A DNA stretch of 64,000 bases from contig JAQFVV010000003.1 of assembly GCA_028023455.1 (NCBI GenBank), positions 29,512,001 through 29,576,000 of the forward strand. The letters are read 5' to 3'. This document shows positions 12,848 to 62,902 of this stretch, one piece after another. The position numbers and the translations under genes were made by a program. Under the pieces are notes generated by a model. The model made no database searches, was not told the DNA's origin, and saw only the letters and a program-made list of their open reading frames with translations. The DNA comes from Epiperipatus broadwayi. Its lineage: Eukaryota; Animalia; Onychophora. Numbering within the stretch: position 1 is the stretch's first letter; every line of letters begins with the position of its first letter.

Positions 12848-15800
12848 TTAAACTTTCCCTGGATCTGGAGGTATTTCATAGTATGGTTTTAAATGTCGAG
12901 CATTAAATGTTCCTTTCACCACTCCATCCTTAGATAACAGGAAGGCATTGTTTCCACACTTTTGTTGAATGAGACATGGTCCTTTATATAGTGGGAAGAA
13001 CTTCCGGGATTCTCTATTGTTTACATTACTTGGTTTTGGGTCCCTCACCCAGACCAGGTCTATTTTAAAAGAATGTGGTTTAGTGTCTTTTCTCCTCTCT
13101 TGAAGCTTAGCCATTTGAGTCATTCATATTCTAGCCTTACCCTGGTCTCTTTTAGGATTTATATGTCTGTGATTGATTGGTACCCGGGTTTTGACTAGCA
13201 GGGGGCATAGTTTTCTGAAGTGGAGTCGTACTGGTGTAAACCCCGTAGATTCATTGATGGTATTAATATATTGAGTCACCTTTTTGTGGTGATTCACCCA
13301 ACCTCTGTGGTTATTGTGTATATATGTTCTGTAGAGACGGTTGATTTCTTTCATCACTCGCTCACAAGGGTTAGATTGGGGGTTTTGAATGGATGTTAGT
13401 GTGTGTTTGATGCCTTGCTTTTCAACCCATGCCTTCCATTCTTTGGAGGTGAAAGCAGATCCATGGTCTGATAAAATGGTCATAGGTTTTCCAACTTCAT
13501 GGTACTGTTTTTGCTGCAGGACTCGAATTGCATTTCATGAGTCGGCGCTCCATACTGGATAAGCACATACATATTTAAAAAATACATCATAAGTTACCAA
13601 GAGGTAATGGTAATGCTTAAATGCCAGTAGAGGCCCATAGTGATCAATTGCCAATAGTTCATTTGGTTTAGATGGAATAATGGGAGTAAGATTGCCAGCA
13701 TACAATTTGTATGGAGGTTTACTCCTAGCACAAATAGCACAATTCCTAAGCACCACCAACACATGAGTATATAGACCATCCCAGTAAAACTGCTGCCTTA
13801 GTGCCTCTTCAGTTTTCCTTGGGCCATAATGTCCTATCAAATTATGAATATGGTCTATTAAAGGGGTACATAGGTTGCTGGGTACCAGGATCTTCCATGG
13901 ATTATCATAATCTTTGGTTCGAATTTGCAGGATTCTATTTCTGATCCTATATCGACCAATAGGGACCTTGGGATAGTGGACTCGTGAAGATTGTGACTGG
14001 TGGAGGGCATCAATTATCCATTGGTAACTTGCTTCCTTAGCCTGCCAGTAAGGGAGCCTATCCAGTTCATTTTCTACCTCTGTTTGCTGCATTCAGCATT
14101 ACTGTAAGTGGTTGATCTCCCAGGGTTGGGTTTTCTGGGAGTGTCTCAATAGGATGGTGACTTAGGATATCAGCAACAAGATTTTCAGGCCCTGGGCAGT
14201 ATATTACTTTGTAGTTGAACTTTTGAAGGGATAAGCTCCAATGGATTAGCCGTTCATTGGTTAAATAGCTACGGTTGAGAAACTCTAAGCACTTGTGGTC
14301 TGTAATGATGATGAACTCTGATCCAAGCAAAATCTGCTTGAATTTATTGCAGGCCCAGAGAATCGCCAGTGTCTCTTGTTCCGTAACAGTATAATTTAGT
14401 TCTGCCCCTCGAAGGGTACGGCTGCAAAAACTGATTACTTGATGTTTACCACTTTTCCCCCATTTGGAATATGATGGCTCCTAATCCCTTCTTACTACTG
14501 TTTGTCTGGACATAGAAAGGATGTGTAAAATCAGGGTGGTGGAGAATGACCGTTTTTAAAATGTTTTCCTTAATACTTTCAAACTCTTCATCATGTTTAC
14601 TTGTCCAGATCCATCACTGGCCTTTCTTTAGAAGATTTATCAGATGGGGGTGTCTTGTGCAAATCCAGGGTAGAATTTGTGGTAATAATTGCACAACCCT
14701 AAGAATGACCGGACATGCTTTCGGGTGGTAGGCTTGGGAAATTTCTTGATGGCTTCCACCTTGTCCGGGTGTGTCTTAATACCCTGTCCATTTACAATGT
14801 GTCCCAGGAAGGATATCTCAGGGAGGGCAAAACAACTTTTTTCCAGGTTAACTGTAATATTCTTTTCAGCACACTCCTGGAAAAACTTCTTTAGACACCT
14901 TAGATGTTCTTCAATGTTTTGTGAGGCAATCACCACATCATGAACATAGCAAACAAGATGTATCTTAATTTCTTCTGATAAGACCATGTCAATGCATCTC
15001 AGCAATCCAGCTCCACTATTGATTAAGCCAAATGGAACTCTCCTGAACTGATGGGTCTGACCATTGTGTCTAAAGGCTGTATACTTCTGATCCCTTGGGT
15101 CTAGTGTCATTTGCCAGTAACTGGCCATAAGGTCCAATGTAGAAAACACAGCCTTGTTGCTAAGTTGAGTGAATATTTCTTGGACAGATGGTGGAACATC
15201 TCGATCAGGGATTGTAATGCTATTGAGCCTCCGGGCATCTAAACATAGTCGGATGGCACCGCTTTTCTTTTTGACTACCACCAAAGGGTTGTTATATGGT
15301 GATGGTCCCTTTTCTATAATTCCCCAATCCATCATCTGTTCTATTTGGTGGTTGACTTCCTCTTTGTATTGGAATGGGATCGGATATGTCTTCATTTGAA
15401 AATAGTTTTCTTCTTTGACTTTAATACGATGCACATAACCCTTAATTTCCCCCAGTGTATTGGAGAATACTTTCACATTGTTGGTGAGGATCTGGCGTAG
15501 TTGGTCTTGATCTTTTGGGGACATTAATGCTGATTCTTGAACCTTTTTTTTGATGAGCTCTAGGTCTGCTTCCTGAGCAATACACCCTACTCTCATGCAG
15601 GTATTACTATTCAGGCCTCTAAAAGGGATTTGTTCTTTCCTGAAAATCAGCTTGCACTGGGCATAATCTATTGTACACTGGTGTTGATATAAAAAATCTG
15701 AGCCTATCACAAGGTTATGAATCAACCCAGCTACAATCAAAAAGGTGTGTCCAACTGTGGTGGTGCTGAGGGTCATTTCTAGCCAAACTTGGTAATTTTC

Positions 15801-15990
15801 TGTTTTGGTTTTCTTTCCATTAGCAAGTGTTAATTGAACAGCCCGGGTGAGTAACCATAGGAGATGTTTTCCCTTTTCCAACTGGTCATACCATTGTTTT
15901 GATATTAGGGAAACTTGACTCCCTGAATCTAATAGGGCATGAGTAACCAGGTTTCTTATTTTGATGTGAATGGTGGGACATGGATCAATG
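12848..15990 (-). pseudogene. Gypsy pol (protease, RT, RNase H, integrase) with frameshifts and stops
   Basis: HALLDSGSQVSLI protease near 15930. RT in ORF 14640-15881 with catalytic YVDD altered to YVHD. RNase H ETLAILWAC...IITDHKCL. Integrase HHCC (HNLIGH...CAIC), LAIDHYGP / SDHGSAF / CERVMKEI, and a GPY/F-like tail, split across ORFs 14067-14330, 13535-14092, 13124-13483 and 12848-13123. Confidence 0.93.
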
Positions 15991-15999
15991 GGTGACCCT

Positions 16000-17450
16000 G
16001 ATAATGAGGTGTCTGCTTCATTGATGATAGTGGAGATGGGGTTTTCTTGTGACCCCTTTGTGTTCCTGAATCTTTTGTTGGGACATCATTGGGAGGAACA
16101 ACCTAACGAGGTCCCTGAAAGTTTTCCGATTGATCCTGGTATCTTCTTTTCAGCATGGTTTGGTTTTGGTCATAGTTTACTCGAGGTTGACTATTCCATC
16201 TCTGGGTTGCTATGGATTGAGTCCACAGGGGCTCCCCTTTCTTCACTCTTTCTTGGGGTTCTGTGTAAAAATTTCCGAGATCCATGGTAGTCAGCAAGTG
16301 TGCCATTTCATCTACATTCGTAATCCTGCTTATCACCATTGCTCGCTGAACTGGCTGGAGCATGTTGGATTGCACGGTCCGGATGATATGAGCTTCTGAA
16401 AATGGGAATGCGGTGAGAGATCTGAATTGCGCTACTTGACAGAGGAAAAACTGAGTGGTTGTTTCCCTCCCTCGATATTTTTCATGCGAGATTTGTTGAA
16501 GAATCTGATCTTGATGCTTCTCGCTCCAATAGCTAGTCAATAATGCTGCTTGGTATTCATCGAATGTTTGGGGTTTTTCATGCATCGACCCCCACCAATT
16601 CTTTGCTGGGCCCTGTAGATAATGATTAGCAATAGCAAGTTGATCTCCCTCACTTGCCTGGTAGAAATAGAATAGTTCTTTTAAACTATCCAGGTGGGCC
16701 TGAGGATTTTCTCCTGGATCTCCTTGGAATACCTTGACCCGGATGAATTTGGCCAGATTTGGCTGAATTCCAGGATCAATCCCTGCCCAGGGATATATTG
16801 GTGTGCTAGTTGGGTGATCATTATTTATTCATGCATCTATTGGGACCTCAATCTTTGTGGAGCCAGTTGGGGTTTTCCAGTTTTGATCCTTGAGGTAGTA
16901 TGGTAGTGTTTGTTCCGGATCCTTTTTAGGTCATGGAATGGGTTGAGTTTTCCCAGATCTGGGCCAGACATCTTTCTTTCACTTTCTAGGTTTTGAGTTT
17001 CCCATTGGTGTCGGGCTTGCCATTCCATTCCCTCATGGATGTTCCGCATATCTGTTTTGATTCTGACTTGTTCCTCTAGTAATTTGTTAATTGCAGATTC
17101 ACACTTTTCAATGCTTGTTTTGGTCTGTTCACACCCCTCATGCAGCTCTTTGATATCTTTTGCAGCTTGCATTTCTCTTTCTTTGATATCTATCTCTGTC
17201 CTTTGGGATAGTTCTTTCATTTGTTGTAGAGTTCTCTCTGCCATCATTCAGCTTGACTCCACATTAATTTGGATCCTCCTCATCATACTCTGGAGCATGG
17301 CATTAACATCTTCACTTTCCTTTTTTTCTATGCTGTTATCCATTTGGATTTTGAAAAGTTTGATAACAGTAATAATGCTGATCTTAGAATTCAAAGCTAT
17401 TTTACTGGAACTATGGCTCACTGAAACTTTAAGACAATCTTGAACAACTA
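16000..17450 (-). pseudogene. Gypsy gag (coiled-coil N-terminus plus retrotransposon gag domain), disrupted
   Basis: ORF 16837-17247 is coiled-coil rich and preceded by an in-frame TGA. ORF 16103-16585 (PQTFDEYQAALLTSYWSEKHQ) is gag-like and lies directly upstream of the protease. Confidence 0.8.
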
Positions 17451-40420: not shown

Positions 40421-41990
40421 AAAAATAGATATCCATTTTATTGCGTAGTAATAAAAAAATGTTTGTCCCATAATTATTTTATTTTTTCCCTATTCAAAAT
40501 CAATTAGCTATGAATGAATTATTCCCTGTATTTAACAAGTTTAAAATACCTCTCAACTTTTCAAATTCAATAATAATTCTAGTTTTAAAATCAAAATAAC
40601 AGAATTTAGTATAAAGAAAACTGGCACTTTGAATCATAATATACACCCGGATATAAATTTTGTTAATTTTATCAAAACTATTAACAAACAAAAGGCAATT
40701 AAATGTGTAGTGTTAAGATTATATAATATTTAGGAAGTAAATTTATATGCACATAAAATTATTACTTTAGAATACAAGTACATGCACCTTTGCAAAAATT
40801 TTTTATTTCACCTAAATTTTTCAGAGATAATTTAAATATAATCCAATAATAGTTATACCATTTTCATATTAAAAAAGTTTTTTAATTTGGTGTTAAGATT
40901 CACTTACATTCTTTTGTTAGCACATATTTTATAATAAAAATTGCAATGACTTTATTATAATTAACAATATGTGATGGAACTTTATAAGATGAGTAATTGG
41001 GCAAGATAAAGCAAGATACATAGCGAGATTTTTTTTTTTAAAAAGCTATAATTTACAACAATAAAGTACATATGTAAATCAACATATGTTTACTATAGAT
41101 GTAGGAAATGTACAGGTAGTAAACTATTGTTATTGATTGTTTAGTTTTGGTTTCTTATGAGACAATGAATCATTGCTAACTCAGCACATACCTGTAGGTA
41201 TATTAAAAATATTTTCAATTCAGCTACGTAACTAATTAATTTATTTACAATTAGTCAAAAATTCTTTAACCAGTAACAATACATTAAATATATTTCTCAT
41301 GTTTGAGTAATCAGAAAATGTTGAATGATACTGCATAATAAATTCTTATTCAATGATTTGCATCCCAACCTAGATTCAGTTTACAGCTTTCATTAGTGAG
41401 AACCTTCAAATCTGGATCTAGTATACTTGAATTTTCAGCATCTAATGCATTTCTCTTCAACTACCATTTACTTTTTTTATTTTTTACTATCAAGCTATCT
41501 GCCGGAAATTCAAAAACACGATATCAGAACTACAGCAGGAGAAATAGATGACTTAAAAAATAAATAAATCTGTAGATAGAGATCATGTGATGTTTTGTTG
41601 ATGCTAATATCTCATATGGTTATAAGTTTTATTCTCAGTACCAAAACGTGTAATAAATATATCTAATGCATATATTGAAACTAGAAGTTGCCCATGTACA
41701 ATTTATTAATATAATACCCAGATCTTTTTGATAAATACATATTTTTATTCCTTTCTTACACTTATATTCAAATCAACAATATACCAAAATTCATGCAAAT
41801 ACAATATACACACCAATTTAAACATGCCAAAAAACCAATTCCATTCTTAGATATGATCAGCAAAATGATGAAGGTGACAAATGAAAATGGACAATAAAAA
41901 AAAAAAACATAAAAACATTTTATTATACAATCAAATTATAAATATTGTAGTAGTAAAAAAAAAAAATATGAAGATGGTCTTCCAATTCAA

Positions 41991-42000
41991 TTTATTTATT
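41991..42000 (-). terminator. Probable distal polyadenylation signal of SPS (AATAAATAAA)
   Basis: Overlapping AATAAA hexamers about 20 nt 3' of the SECIS on the minus strand. AATAAA is common in this AT-rich DNA, so position is the main support. Confidence 0.5.
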
Positions 42001-42021
42001 ATTTTTATCACAATAAGCCTA

Positions 42022-42120
42022 GTCCTGCAATTTTTTAATCAAATAAGACATCATCCAGATAGGTTCTGTTGTTTTCCAGAATTTTCCTGCTCCGGATTCA
42101 TAAATAAATAAAGCAGGAAC
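42022..42120 (-). promoter_or_regulatory. Type II SECIS element in the SPS 3' UTR
   Basis: Minus strand reads A-UGAA (42101-42097), helix II UCCGGAGCAGG, unpaired AAAA (42085-42082), mini-stem UUCUG/CAGAA, return strand CCUAUCUGGA, then UGAU (42053-42050). Outer helix UCCUGC/GCAGGA. Folded by eye. Confidence 0.85.
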
Positions 42121-42660
42121 CTTTCACATCATTGTAAATAACCAAGCATACTTCAAGTTAATATGACCAGATCATGGCAGCTGCTCAATTCTGCCATGCA
42201 GAGATCTATATTAACAGGTAGAATGAGTGCCTAAACATAAAAATATACATACACACACACATAATGAAAATGCAATGATTATCTGAATTAGACAATGTGA
42301 TAAAAAGTGATGAGCTGCAATTTTGTAATTACAATATCCAACTTATATTTCTCCCATAGCAAAGCACAATATCTACATTAAAATCTACTGCTGCAATCGT
42401 ATAAAAAATAGAGAATAAGAACATTTCATTTACACAAAATACACAAGATGAAAACTAAAAAAAATAATAAAAATAAAAGCAGCAGACAGAAAAAGAATTT
42501 CCAATGATTATGTGCAACTGGCTGACTTAAAAAGTTATCAAAAAAATAAAAGTCCTAGATTTAATTCATATATATATATATTTAACACCCTCCCCTCCCC
42601 CCTATTTCTTAATAATCCAAACAGATGTTTAATGAATATCTTTCCTGCCCAGATCAATAG

Positions 42661-42845
42661 CTACCACAGCTCTCCATCTCGTTCCTTGGCTGGCACCTCA
42701 ATGCAGCGCGGCTTATCAATAATACGTGCTGTGCGATTGCCTTTTTCCACAATGCCTATAATCCAAGCCTGGTAACCTTCTTGTTTCTCAATGTCTTTGC
42801 AGTAAGCTGCAGCCTGTTCTCTCGGTAAGCAGATCAGGAGGCCAC
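42661..42845 (-). CDS. SelD: Selenophosphate synthetase last coding exon ([60 protein letters not shown]-stop)
   Basis: Acceptor ttttttatttag at 42846-42847; G|GT completes ETSG-G; TAG stop at 42661-42663. Nearly identical, from memory, to the insect SPS1 C-terminus. Not in the ORF track. Confidence 0.97.
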
Positions 42846-43359
42846 CTAAATAAAAAAATAAAATTTTAAAACTTTACTGTATCTGCGTCTCTATATGTAT
42901 ATTTAAGACAAAACCGTTTTTCATAAGAAAAAAAAAAGATTTTTTTTCTTTCAGGTAGCCATGGTATCTGTCTAATCTTAGTTAAAAGTTAAAATAAGAA
43001 CAGAAAACTATTCAGATCCTGACAATTTGGCAAGCCTAGTAATATTATTTTCACCGTTTCTCTATGGTGGACTCTATACTTCGCAACAGGTTATTTAAAG
43101 ACTTTTTATACATAAAACGCACATGCAAAATATATTTTGGTGGTATTCCAATAAATTCAACAGATTAAATTTAATTATAAAAGCATTTAATTTTTATTAA
43201 AAATGCAATTTTAAAATTGTTATTGCATACAAATTTAATTATATAAATAATATTACTATAATTATGACTCAAAAATGCAATGAATATATTTAATATAGAA
43301 AAAGTGATACATTGGATAAGTTTTTGTTCAAAGAATGGTGGAAATAACAAGTAAATAGA

Positions 43360-49331: not shown

Positions 49332-49544
49332 CTGATGTTTCTGCAGAAAGCCCTTGAAGCAATCCAAACATTGTGCCACAAGCCTTAGCCACGGCGGCCA
49401 TCTTGGCAATGACTGGTAAGTTGTGGATGACAAATGACACTTCATTTTTCTGATTACGTGCAAGATTTTGTGCATGCCCAAGGAGCCCAAAACCTGTAAT
49501 GTCTGTGGCTCCATGAGCATTATATTTATGCATCAAACGGGCAG
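49332..49544 (-). CDS. SelD: Selenophosphate synthetase exon ([70 protein letters not shown])
   Basis: Acceptor ttttatctttcag at 49545-49546 and donor gttagt at 49331. 213 nt, phase 1 on both sides. Contains the [11 protein letters not shown] and ETSGG motifs of the SelD family. Confidence 0.97.
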
Positions 49545-50399: not shown

Positions 50400-52867
50400 G
50401 TCAGCCAAGGCAGCAGTAGATAGCCGAAGGCAGACGATGCTAAGAATCTCCTAATTGCAGACACAAACTACCATTTAATGCAGATCACTTTCAAATGAAG
50501 GAAGATTGCAAGAAATGGAAGAGCTGTCTCATATTAAATGGGACATTATTGGACTTTGTGAAGTTAGAAAAAAAAGTTTTAAGAGGCAATTGATTTAAAA
50601 AGTGGACATGTACTGTATTACAAGGAACAAACATTGGAAATACAAGTGGAGTAGGATTCAATATAAATAAAAAGTGGAAGAACAACATTGTAGAGATTGA
50701 TGATGTATCTGACAGAGTGGCAAGATTTATGCTCCAACAAGTTGTCATTGTGATGAAGTAGAGGAATTTTATACGGATATACAAAAAGCTTTTGATTAAA
50801 CTAAATATTTTAAAATTGTCACGGGAGACTTTAATGCTAGAATTGGTAAACAATTGAAAGATGAAAGTGCTGTAGATAAATTTGGTTACAGTGACAGAAA
50901 TGAGAGGACATAGACTTGTGGAGTTTGCAGAAAAAGAAAAACTTTATATTATGAATTCTTTTTTTGAGAAAAATGTTAAACATCGAATGAGGGTACAACA
51001 GAATTGGATTATATTTTGATTAACAGAAAATATGTATTTCAAGATTGTAATGTTCTTAATAAATTCAATGCAGGAGTTAATGCAAAACTAGAGAGACAAA
51101 AATTATTAAGAAAAACAATATACATAGTTGATATTCCTCATCTTCAGAAACATTCCAATGAATTTAGATTAAAACTTGCAAATCATTTACAAATATTAAC
51201 AGATTTTGAACATGATTCAGATTTGAATGAAATCAATAGAAAAATAACTCATACAATTTTAAAAACTACAATAAAGATAGCTAGTACAAAAAAGCAGCAA
51301 TTGGCCAATAAAATTTCTTCTGAGACAAAACAATTTATGAAGAAGGGAAAAAGCTCCAAGTAATGATGAAATTGTAATTGATATCTTAAAAGAAACAGGT
51401 AAAGAAATGAAAATTTTTTTAGCAAAATTAATATTGAGTGTCTAAATGATAAAGATGTATCAGATGATTGGAAGAATGCAGTATTAATATTAATATTTAG
51501 AAAGGGTGATAAAGAAGATAGTAGAAATTACAGACTTATCAGTCTTTTATCAGTTCTACACAAAATTTTTACCAAAATAATTACAACATGTCTATAGCAA
51601 ATTTTGGATTTTAACCAACCAAAAAAAAACATGCTGAATTTAAAAATGGTTTTAGTATATTGGATCATGTCCAAGTATTGAAAGAAATTATAGAAAGGAC
51701 CAATGAATATGAGTTGACATTATGTTTTGGATTTGTAGATTATGAAAAGGCATATGATTCTATAAGCATTTCTTCAGTGATTATAGCATGAGATTGTCAG
51801 AATATAAACCTCGGATATATTCTGACAAATATTTATAAAAATGCAGCAGCAACAATTAGATTACATAATGATACTAAAAAAATTAACATTGAGAATGATG
51901 TACAACAAGATGACTCTATATCTCCGAAACTTTTCATAATAGTTTGCAACAAGTATTTTGTGGATTAAAATGGGAAGCTATGAGAATAAAAAGTAAATGG
52001 AGATTATTTAAGTCATCTAGATTTTGCAGATGATGTAATTGTTTTTGTAAATAATGCTTTAGAGCTTCAGGGAATGTTGCAGGAGTTATCAGATGAAAGT
52101 AAAAAAATAGGATTAAAAATAAATGTTAAATAGAATAAAGTAAATTGAGTTTCTGAAAAGATGGAAATAAATATTGATATTGATGAGTTAATTCAATACA
52201 CTCTCTCATCACAAAATCTTATAAAATCACTTGAGTAAGTTCTTGCACTTCATGGTTTGAATCTTAGAAGTTAACAACAACAAATATCTTGGTCAAACTA
52301 TTACCACAAATGGAAACATAATGGATAAAATTAATTATAGAATTAAGCTTGGTTGGAATGCTTTTGGTAGAAAAAAATTAATATTAAATGGAAATATATG
52401 CCTATGTGCTTGAAAAGGAAGGTTTTTAATAAACGTGTTTTACCAGTTCTTACTTATGGATCTGAGACTTGGACAGTTAACTGAAGAGCAATATAGAGAC
52501 TTCAGACTACTCAACGAAGTATGGAGAGATGCATGTTAAAAATAACAAGAAGAGATCAAAAACAAAATACATGGTTGAGAGAAAAACAGGTATTATTGAC
52601 ATCATTGAAAGAATTGATAGAGTGAATTGGAGTTGGACTGGACATATTGCTAGAAGAGACGATAATGGATGGACAGTTGAAATCTTAAACTGGATTCCAA
52701 GAGATTGTGAACGACTTAAAAAAAAAGATCACACATGAGTGGATAAATGAAATAAGTATGCTGGAGTGATGTATAGAAGAAAGGCTAGAAGTCGGATAAG
52801 ATAGATTGAACTTTGAGAGACCTTCATCCTGCAGTGGATCAATAATGATTGAAAATGATGATGATGA
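50400..52867 (+). mobile_element. Near full-length decayed RTE-clade LINE, antisense within an SPS intron (5' UTR may extend to about 49810)
   Basis: EN HIKWDIIGLCEVRK near 50530, GDFNARIG near 50825, LDYILIN at 51004, RT KGDKEDSRNYRLISLLS near 51500, FVDYEKAYDSI, DFADDVIVF near 52025, PVLTYGSETW, WSWTGHIAR, and a 3' end ATCCTGCAGTGGAT...(TGA)n. Confidence 0.9.
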
Positions 52868-53785
52868 ATATATATAAAAGTTATAATTATTCTTTTACTA
52901 AAATCTCTAAATGTTACAAATATTTAAAACTACTGAAGTATAAATATTTATAGTTTTGCACCTTATACAAAAATTGGCTACTTAAATATGTTTGAATGTT
53001 ATTTGCATTGCTGGTTAGTAGTATTTAACTACATACATTCTTAATTATCTTTATATCCTAATTATTACACAGATTGTAACTAATTTAATATGCTATGCAG
53101 ATACAATAGACAAGCAAACAAATGAATGGATTGGGAGGAAAATGGGGGCAATGTAGTCATGCCATATTAGGATAAAGCAAATTTATTTTAACAATTTTGT
53201 ATCAATTTGAAGTTTATTTTATCATTGGACATGCAAGATTTCTATATTCATCGTGAGACAATTGGTTATTACCTATTTGGATAGAAAAAGAAAGATGTAC
53301 TAAATATATGGAATGGCTAAGATGGAAAAAAAAATGTCCGCTACGTATTTGATTATGATTTAAGTTTAATTTACACGTTCGTTTTACTCCATAGAAAGAG
53401 CAAATTCTCCTCTACTTTAAAATTTGAGAATGGAAAGAGGATTAGTGACATTTAATATACATTAAGATAAGTAATGAGAAAAGATATATTTTAAGTCTAT
53501 TACTTTATTTTTCCCCTATTCTACTGCTATCATCTATTTAAGGTTAAGTAATCAATATATACTAGATGGTAATGAAATTAAATCCATGTCCGCAAATTAT
53601 TTCTGGCTTATGACTTTTATTAATAAGAAACTTAAGTAATGCATCTAGTATCATTTGATTAATCAACCTTACAATAAATGGCAGCAAAGGAGTAGGAAAA
53701 AAAAAAGTCTGCTTATAAAGCATTGTGTAAATAGGGGATCAAATGAAATTTCTGCTAGAGCACTATATGATAATGTGTAGCAATA

Positions 53786-53876
53786 ATTCACCTCTTACAA
53801 ATCTCACTTCTCAAAAAATTTACTTTATTATTTAATAAGGTAAATTTTTTGAGAGGTGAGATTTGGGGGAGGGAAT
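53786..53876. repeat. Hairpin with a 33 bp core stem extendable to about 44 bp
   Basis: caaatctcacttctcaaaaaatttactttatta / taataaggtaaattttttgagaggtgagatttg. Confidence 0.8.
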
Positions 53877-54168
53877 AGGAATTTGAAAGATTTTTATGTG
53901 TATTAAATGTGTACAAATAGTAAAGTTATATATTTTCTGCTAGATGTTTTGAAGAACCTACACAGCATTTGGGGAAGGGGGTGTGTGAATTATAATATCT
54001 GCTAGATAATAAACTTATTAACTTCTTATTATTTTTTTATTTTAAACAACATTTACGAAAGAAAAAGATTTATCTTCAAACACAGCAAATTTATAAATAC
54101 AGTATTGTGAAAAGTATGAGATAAAATCAAAATTATTTATATAATTTTTGCATGTTGATTATATGTAT

Positions 54169-55018
54169 ATCATCATCATCATTGTCAACCATTATCAATC
54201 CACTACAGGATAAAGAACTCTCCAAGTTTAATCCATCTTCTCCGATCTCTAGCCCCTCTTCGCCACATTACACCTGCATACTTTCTTATTTTCATCCATG
54301 GTCTTTTACAATTTTTTATGAATCCAGTTTAAGATTTCAGTGTCCATCTATTATCATCTTTTCTAGAAATATGTCCAGCCCAACTCCAATCTTTTAATTC
54401 TTTTAATGATGTCAGTAACACCATTTGTTCTCTTATCCATATATTGTGTTTTTGATCTCTTTTTGTTACTCCTAACATGTATCTCTCCATACATCTTTGA
54501 GTAGTCTGAAGTCTCTGTATTGCTCTTCTATTAAGTATCCAAGTCTCAGATCCATAAGTAAGAACTGGTAAAACACATTTATTAACAACCTTCCTTTTCA
54601 AAAACATAGACATATTTCCTTTTAGTATTAAGCTATTTCTACCAAAAGCACTCCAATCAAGTTTAATTCTATGATTAATTTCATCCATTATGTTTCCATC
54701 TGTAGTAATAATCTGACTCTCCTAACTCATCATAATCAATCTTTATTTTCATCTTTTGGGAAAATTCATTGAACATTACTTTAGTCTTCTTAGTCCTATT
54801 TTCTTACTTTCATATGATAACTCTTGCAACATTCCCTAAAGCTCTGAAGCATTATTTGCAAAAACAACAATATTATCTGCAAAATCTAAATGACTTAAAT
54901 AATCTCCACTTACTTTTACTCCTTTAGTTTCCCATTTTAATCCACAAAATACTTCTTTCAGCACTGCTGTAAAAAGTTTTGGAGATAAGGAGACATATAT
55001 TAATTCTAATATTTTCAC
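54169..55018 (-). mobile_element. 5'-truncated copy of the same RTE family
   Basis: ORFs 54836-55018 (HLDFADNIVVF) and 54329-54688 (PVLTYGSETW, WSWAGHIS), ending in a (GAT)n tail at about 54169. Collinear with about 51900-52867. Confidence 0.9.
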
Positions 55019-56540: not shown

Positions 56541-56731
56541 CTGTTCTATTAAGCCTTGCCATGCTATTCATGGCCCTTTGATATGCCTTTTTGACATCAT
56601 CCTCACTCACGACTAGTTTAATGCGATTCCATTTTTCAGGAACATGCAACCATTGATAAGCATTGACGGCCACCTGAGTTCCCAGTGGCTTGGTCATTAC
56701 CAGAACATCCCCTGGCATGGCATTATCAGGA
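56541..56731 (-). CDS. SelD: Selenophosphate synthetase exon ([63 protein letters not shown])
   Basis: Acceptor ttttttag at 56732-56733 and donor gtattt at 56540. 191 nt, phase 2 in (AT|T = Ile), phase 1 out. Contains the SPS motif GDVLVLTKPLGTQ. Confidence 0.97.
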
Positions 56732-59954: not shown

Positions 59955-60465
59955 TCAGTAAAACTGAAGATTTGCATTCCTCCTCTTAACCTAACAACTA
60001 AATAAAGAATAGATTCTTTTTAAATGTTAGTCTGACAGAGTACATCCATCTTTCAATTGCCTACTAGAAAAAATCAAAGATGGGTCTGGTGAAATACTAT
60101 TCTTATCTTGGATCTTTGCTTTAACATTTTCAATTATATCACTAGACTCAACTTCTAATGTTATTCTTTTGTCAATGAGTGTTTTTACAAATATTTGCAT
60201 TTCTTCAATTAATCTCGGAATCAAATGAAGAAAAGATTCTTTTTAAATATAATAGTCTGAGAATGAGGCCATCTTCCAATAGCTTTCCAGCAAAAATTAA
60301 ACAATGATCAGATGGAAGAATACCTTCTTTACCTTTTCAAGTGTCATTTGATAGGTTCAACTTCTAATATGATTATTTTCCAGTTAATATTTTTATAAAT
60401 ATTTACATTCTGCCTCTGAGACTCAAGACTAAATGAAGAATAGATTCTTTTTGAATATCTGTCTA
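59955..60465 (-). pseudogene. Processed polyubiquitin pseudogene (tail of one unit, two decayed units, start of a fourth)
   Basis: Head-to-tail units start at ATG 60408, 60200 and 59977: [33 protein letters not shown]...TLSD*NI*KESILYLVVRLRGG-MQIF. Stops and deletions throughout. Confidence 0.93.
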
Positions 60466-61959: not shown

Positions 61960-62600
61960 AACCAGTGGCCTAAGTCGCCCCCCAAGTGTCCCCGAAGAGC
62001 TTTTCCAGCGTTAACAAGCGATCCCTGAACATAGTCCTTCGAATACATTTTTTACATATATCCAATGGTTCCTTACTTCCTTGCTTAAAAACAAAATAAT
62101 TTCTAGTTAACCACATGGCATAAAGCAGGAACAGTCCCATTCTAATCGTAGCAAAAACACCACTTGTTATAGCGTCTTTGATTCTTAGAATTTTCATGTT
62201 AGCCGGCAGTATTCTGGTTATATTTTGACTAGCAGGACTCAAAAATGGGCAAGCAGTAAAAATATGTCCAATAGTTTCATCCGCTATTTTACACAAGCTA
62301 CATAGTGGTTCTATTTTAGAGAAATTTCTATAATTTACCAAAAAATGATTCGTTGGCAAGGCTTTCAAGTTAAGTTTTATGATAACTTTGTTTGGCTAAG
62401 ATGTTGTGCTTTTGGTTGCATTCTTTTATAACATCTATCAGTTTTAATAAGCAGAAACTTCTTAACACAACTGTTTTATTCTCCTATCTTTAGTAATTAT
62501 AATCACTATTTATGACACTCAACCTTGAAATAATATGCAGTTTAGCAATTTTGGATATTTCATTTAAATAGTTATTGAAAATTTGATTCCTTTTAAATTC
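61960..62600 (-). mobile_element. L1/Tx1-type non-LTR 3' fragment (zf-RVT region)
   Basis: ORF 61970-62368: KALPTN...PLCSLCKIADETIGHIFTACPF. Confidence 0.75.
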
Positions 62601-62789: not shown

Positions 62790-62902
62790 ATGATAAATTC
62801 ATTAGACTGACAGACTGTTGAAGCTACGCCTCCAATAGTCAACCAAGGATTGAGAACAGTCTGTCCACCGGTAACGGATGTACCGGCTTCCTGGGCACAG
62901 TC
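62790..62902 (-). CDS. SelD: Selenophosphate synthetase, first exon visible in window ([37 protein letters not shown])
   Basis: Acceptor tttgtttttctag at 62903-62904 and donor gtaagt at 62789. 113 nt = 37 codons + AT. Translation matches the SPS motif AGTxVTGGQ(T/S)VxNPWxxIGGVAS. The ORF track shows a different frame here. Confidence 0.96.

Follow-up and report, generated by a model that had tools for sequence, protein, structure and literature searches.

A type II SECIS element in the transcribed 3' untranslated region of a probable selenocysteine-type selenophosphate synthetase gene

The locus described here raises the following question: is its selenophosphate synthetase (SPS) gene an SPS1-like gene that unexpectedly carries a SECIS element, as a preliminary description of this DNA proposed, or is it the ordinary selenocysteine (Sec) form of the gene? 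According to Mariotti et al. 2015 (PMC4561486), the SPS of the metazoan ancestor was an SPS2 that contained Sec and had a SECIS. In their account, vertebrates, tunicates, annelids and insects are the only groups in which a duplication, independent in each case, gave rise to SPS1, and the SPS1 of insects lost the SECIS; the SPS1-UGA genes, which are known only in insects, are defined by the absence of this element (PMC4561486). The production of Sec and non-Sec isoforms from one ancestral metazoan SPS gene is a speculation of the same authors (PMC4561486). The genome paper on the centipede Strigamia reported a myriapod with SPS2 and the full Sec machinery, and described the selenoproteomes of non-insect arthropods as rich (PMC4244043). 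Using the sequence of the whole analyzed stretch of 64 kb (hereafter, the window), public RNA data and comparisons to orthologous genes, we conclude that the window very probably contains the 3' part of a Sec-type SPS gene, i.e., an orthologue of SPS2 (SEPHS2, SelD), with a type II SECIS in the 3' untranslated region (3'UTR).

The upstream exons of the gene were found by tblastn with full-length SPS proteins. Four exons on the minus strand (Table 1), with AG/GT borders and compatible phases, form a continuous C-terminal part of 233 amino acids, and the last of these exons encodes the last 61 SPS residues. The three introns within the window measure 6.1, 7.0 and 6.5 kb. The Pfam domain AIRS_C was matched in two of the exons, and the encoded protein is 85-89% identical to named arthropod SPS proteins; thus, the homology to SelD/SPS, a family with AIRS and AIRS_C domains, is clear, and the gene had been assigned correctly in the preliminary description. 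The active-site motif G-x-GCK was not found anywhere in the 64-kb window, and therefore the N-terminal 150-190 residues of the protein are encoded beyond coordinate 64000. No tRNA gene was found in the window.

The window is very AT-rich (27.7% GC) and contains several mobile-element sequences. The body of a Ty3/gypsy-type LTR retrotransposon with long open frames occupies 12848-17247 (minus strand); its parts include an RVT_1 reverse transcriptase (14640-15881), an integrase zinc-binding domain (13535-14092), and other integrase-like and gag-like ORFs. The SPS introns are filled with pieces of non-LTR retrotransposons, marked by RT-like ORFs and a zf-RVT match, at 61970-62368 (minus strand) and 51000-55000, and one such fragment lies approximately 420 nt 3' of exon 62902-62790, in the following intron. 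Also within an SPS intron, a 65-aa ORF at 60027-60224 (minus strand) matches the ubiquitin family (Pfam E 1.5e-10) and is clearly degenerate; it is probably a fragment of a ubiquitin retro-pseudogene.

Table 1. Coordinates of the SPS gene parts and of the SECIS hairpin in the window
Feature	Coordinates	Strand	Observations
SPS coding exon, first within the window	62790..62902	minus	DCAQEAGTS...NEFI; AG acceptor and GT donor; tblastn with SPS homologues, frame
SPS coding exon	56541..56731	minus	Protein end ...ARLNRT; tblastn, AG/GT borders, frame
SPS coding exon, AIRS_C domain	49332..49544	minus	Protein end ...SAETS; 3' end joined to 42845 in RNA contigs of 4 species
Last coding exon	42661..42845	minus	AG acceptor; ...ERDGELW; TAG stop 42663-42661; covered by RNA contigs
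3'UTR, at least 1.0 kb in run X1	41624..42660	minus	RNA contigs X1 41624-42581, X10 41955-42847
Complete SECIS stem-loop including helix I	42021..42121	minus	Unconstrained MFE -27.6 kcal/mol, z -2.55
SECIS core and upper part	42050..42101	minus	Best SECIS-pattern match in 128 kb, -14.3 kcal/mol; shape kept in 4 relatives

Public RNA runs of 10 related organisms contain the stretch, and contigs of four of these were compared over 41300-43300. The last exon and the UTR are covered by contigs in all four species, and the intron segment 42908-43100 in none of them. In all four species, contigs leave the window sequence at 42845-42847, and the next 30 letters map uniquely to 49334-49363, i.e., to the end of the third exon; therefore, the transcripts are spliced. 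A 1345-nt contig of run X10 is unbroken over 41955-42847, placing the coding sequence and the SECIS on one molecule. The 1235-nt coding contig of run X1 reaches 1019 nt upstream of exon 4, and its length implies that no less than 500 nt of the coding sequence in the mRNA come from exons beyond the window, sufficient for an SPS of full length. The preliminary description had made its reading depend on the presence of the hairpin in the mRNA, and these spliced contigs place the SECIS inside the 3'UTR of the mature message.

Two details of that description were accurate in one part and had to be revised in the other. The SECIS does follow the stop codon within the 3'UTR, but it starts 559 nt 3' of the stop, not about 540 nt. 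It is indeed close to AATAAA (the proximal pair, at 42000-41991), but the RNA contigs extend past this pair to approximately 41624 (X1); further copies of AATAAA are located at 41924, 41749, 41707 and 41633. Upstream polyadenylation that would skip the SECIS was considered and rejected: ATTAAA is found at +28 and +96, but contigs of X9 and X10 run through these sites, and read depths show no consistent drop. Neither the contigs nor the list of hexamers gave any sign of transcripts that end before the SECIS. It should be noted that at 41902, 42184, 42566 and 42581 several contigs of X1, X4 and X9 terminate at low-complexity tracts, their last letters being Illumina adapter sequence; these ends are artefacts of library or assembly, not transcript ends.

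The hairpin at 42121-42021 is a well-formed, textbook type II SECIS, whose activity in recoding we infer. The 5' core consists of the conserved A followed by UGA at 42101-42098 (A-UGA-A, extending to 42097), and the 3' core is UGAU at 42053-42050; the AUGA of the 5' strand and the GA of the 3' strand can form the tandem G.A quartet. The 11-nt 5' strand of helix II (42096-42086) is matched with 42063-42054 in six base pairs, a 2x1 internal loop and three base pairs, i.e., nine pairs in total plus the internal loop. Above it are the unpaired AAAA at 42085-42082 and the mini-stem (helix III) of five base pairs, 42081-42077 with 42068-42064, which closes a loop of 8 nt. Helix I, in the unconstrained minimum free energy (MFE) structure, is closed by pairing of 42121-42113 with 42028-42021, plus A/U pairs.

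A plain unconstrained fold of 42015-42125 reproduces exactly the SECIS shape (-27.6 kcal/mol, z = -2.55). For the 106-nt slice 42040-42145 (minus strand), the MFE structure is a different, competing hairpin that joins 42117-42110 to the 5' strand of SECIS helix II; once helix I is included (111 nt), the SECIS shape prevails over this competitor. The predicted competing folds could possibly act as a conformational switch. An outer AUGA at 42132 was tried as the SECIS core and rejected, since helix II does not pair there, as judged by inspection and by the scan described below. The Rfam covariance models of SECIS produced no match at E<=10 in a cmscan of 41500-43000 and of the 121-nt slice 42010-42130, which counts as a negative outcome for the element, although we take it to reflect the low sensitivity of these models rather than to be evidence against the hairpin.

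The frequency of such structures expected by chance was estimated with our own scanner of the SECIS pattern, which required A or G followed by UGA, a spacing of 9-12 nt, AA or CC, a 3' GA and four closing pairs, and scored the sites by the energy of the upper stem. The SECIS site was ranked at the top on both strands of the 64-kb window (128 kb), with -14.3 kcal/mol compared to -8.9 kcal/mol for the runner-up. When the whole window was shuffled 400 times with its dinucleotide composition preserved, only four sites reached -14.3 kcal/mol. This corresponds to a chance rate of approximately 0.08 such sites per Mb of strand, i.e., approximately 8e-5 per 1-kb UTR. An origin of the hairpin from a repeat was rejected, there being no second copy in the window. 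The motifs, the helices, the unconstrained fold and the top rank in the scan thus bear out the type II SECIS that had been proposed after the stop codon.

No differences are listed for the last exon in the four related species, and the divergence in the UTR is approximately 2%. Four substitutions are located in or beside the SECIS in these relatives, and AUGA, GA, AAAA and the fold remain intact in all of them. The change at 42093 (minus-strand G>A) converts a G.U pair of helix II to A-U; the change at 42089 is within the internal loop; the change at 42053 (U>C, in X10) affects the free fourth position of the quartet; and the change at 42049 is outside the core. A double compensatory change in the SECIS was not found among the four close relatives. 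The relatives being this close, conservation of the hairpin carries little weight.

More distant orthologues are informative for the active-site codon. In the millipede (L006), the codon at G*GCK is TGA, and a strong type II SECIS follows the stop at a distance of 574 nt. SECIS-like hairpins were located at +787 in the crab (L009), whose active site also has a TGA, and at +246 in the scorpion locus (L005). The sequence LKG*GCKVPQ is encoded by five invertebrate transcripts (L001-L004 and L007). Altogether, a TGA was present in every orthologous gene or transcript whose active-site exon was readable. In the preliminary description, automated annotation was expected to cut genes of this kind, and this was observed: the scorpion, millipede, crab, amphipod and octopus models, 315-327 aa in length, begin at a Met past the UGA, and such post-UGA models are often named 'inactive selenide, water dikinase-like'. 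Two side observations concern the transcripts. The Logan transcripts L001-L003 of P0199 combine LKG*GCKVPQ with a glutamine-rich N-terminal extension, and the 576 nt of 3'UTR that they contain include no SECIS-like site; either the contig ends before the SECIS, or these transcripts are of a UGA type that has no SECIS and occurs in taxa other than the named insects. In L004, the sole SECIS-like site in the 3'UTR of the UGA-containing SPS transcript (1648-1690) has a GUGA core, not AUGA.

The type of the SPS can be addressed by comparison of the 233 amino acids to those of other animals. The identity is 89% to the lobster, 87% to the millipede, 86% to the scorpion and 82-85% to molluscs, and it is 85% to the SPS1 of both Drosophila and Aedes. 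In the maximum-likelihood tree, the SPS of the window branches near the root of the protostomes, where the order is not resolved, and is part of neither the insect SPS1 clade (95/96) nor the wider arthropod clade (92/93) nor the lophotrochozoan clade (98/89), the placement itself being weak. All three intron positions are identical to those of the scorpion SPS gene, which is only a hint. The absence of a SECIS, by which insect SPS1 is recognized, does not apply to this gene, since a well-formed SECIS is present in its mRNA. The view of the locus as an SPS1-like gene that unexpectedly has a SECIS was not sustained: the lobster, millipede and scorpion proteins are at 86-89% identity, compared to 85% for Drosophila SPS1, and the tree, with its weak placement, has the gene outside the insect SPS1 clade. 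The C-terminal GELW, which had been regarded as a mark of insect SPS1, also lost this meaning: dipteran and beetle SPS1 end in ...VPAKD/E without GELW, whereas the GELW tail is present in molluscs, an annelid, crustaceans, the scorpion, the millipede, a springtail, Hemiptera and Hymenoptera.

An SPS protein or transcript of the same species was sought by protein searches (an Elysia query, P0008; an SPS profile; a C-terminal profile) and by an exhaustive exon search, and none of these yielded a sequence more than 89% identical across all 233 aa. Among short fragments, the best one (P0092, 94%) was rejected as a genomic piece of another taxon; it does not contain the 172/173 intron.

Several other explanations of these observations have to be weighed. 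The window could come from the genome of an insect or another hexapod, in which SPS2 persisted as a slow-evolving copy or SPS never split into SPS1 and SPS2. This is quite unlikely. A sister-group relationship of the window sequence to insect SPS1 cannot be rejected with the AU test (p = 0.18), and across the 233 aa no column separates insect from non-insect proteins; however, the free tree puts it outside both the insect SPS1 clade and the wider arthropod clade, and it shares every intron position in the window with the scorpion gene. Moreover, even in an insect, a Sec-type SPS2 with a SECIS would be an already described arrangement (PMC4561486). If SPS had never split in a hexapod, the date of the insect SPS duplication would move. 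Slightly less probable still, in our assessment, is a single SPS gene that gives rise to Sec and non-Sec isoforms, by read-through of the UGA or by regulated inclusion of the SECIS, or a hexapod SPS1-type gene with a working SECIS; the latter, if true, would re-date the insect SPS duplication.

The remaining explanations concern the hairpin. That the active-site codon was converted to Cys or another sense codon, with the hairpin left as a recent fossil SECIS that has no role in recoding, is highly improbable, given that five species retain every core motif and each of the three helices and that the readable orthologues uniformly have TGA, even though the codon itself lies outside the window and the sampled close relatives are too alike to reveal purifying selection on the hairpin. 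We assign the lowest probability, a very small one, to a chance structure in an AT-rich UTR, combined with a gene of the SPS1-UGA type that is read through without Sec. The lack of a match to the Rfam models and the existence of a competing fold would be compatible with this explanation, but the chance rate given above is very low for a UTR of this size, the site is the single best one in 128 kb, and its distance from the stop (559 nt) is nearly that of the millipede SPS2 SECIS (574 nt). In addition, the SPS1-UGA genes have no SECIS by definition and are found in insects only (PMC4561486).

The closest known system is the ancestral-type SPS2 of the millipede Chamberlinius hualienensis (L006), the crab Petrolisthes (L009) and the centipede Strigamia. 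The gene shares with non-insect arthropod SPS an identity of 86-89% over the last 233 aa (lobster, millipede, scorpion) and the GELW C-terminus, and it shares with the ancestral-type SPS2 a type II SECIS that has AUGA, AAAA and a helix II strand of 11 nt, at 559 nt from the stop here and at 574 nt in the millipede. Conversely, its introns (6-7 kb) are much longer than those of these relatives, and the sequences of the SECIS helices are not alignable, so that the architecture alone is shared. Compared to Drosophila SelD and the insect SPS1-Arg proteins, the gene is 85% identical over 227 aa and belongs to the same AIRS/AIRS_C fold family; however, SPS1-Arg has GRGCK and no SECIS (PMC4561486), whereas the gene of the window has a SECIS and in the tree falls outside the insect SPS1 clade, and the SPS1-Arg of Diptera and Coleoptera ends in ...VPAKD/E in place of GELW. 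The hymenopteran and paraneopteran SPS1-UGA genes, which undergo non-Sec read-through with an HRE hairpin, are similar in the GELW tail, in the identity (88% to Cotesia) and probably in an in-frame UGA, but differ by definition in being SECIS-less (PMC4561486). The HRE and the GGG-UGY hexanucleotide belong to an exon that here lies beyond the window. Finally, Ciona SPS-ae is a single gene with Sec and Gly isoforms that are produced from alternative 5' exons; the likeness to it may be that of a single SECIS-bearing gene descended from the ancestral SPS2 (PMC4561486), whereas there is no evidence here of alternative 5' exons or isoforms, the window holding the 3' part of the gene alone.

By analogy with this gene family, the active-site codon of the gene itself would be UGA, and the hairpin would be active. 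The kink-turn core of the SECIS (AUGA/UGAU) would bind SBP2, which would recruit eEFSec and Sec-tRNA, and an in-frame UGA within the active-site exon, which lies upstream, would be decoded as selenocysteine, not as a stop. The resulting enzyme is expected to make selenophosphate, which is itself required for the synthesis of Sec.

The combination of an SPS gene with a SECIS, which had been presented as unusual, is the known ancestral state of metazoan SPS2, a slow-evolving gene of the Sec type (PMC4561486), with the millipede and crab orthologues having both a TGA and a SECIS-like hairpin. The SECIS-bearing SPS gene described here is therefore the ordinary ancestral arrangement, already described, in one more species. 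Its practical value is in annotation: invertebrate models of Sec-type SPS2 are routinely cut at the UGA, and this long-intron gene is likely to be mis-modelled as well. The published picture of SPS evolution is unchanged, and the gene fits the ancestral state described in 2015 (PMC4561486). An intact, transcribed SECIS in an SPS gene is a good marker of the use of selenocysteine by the organism.
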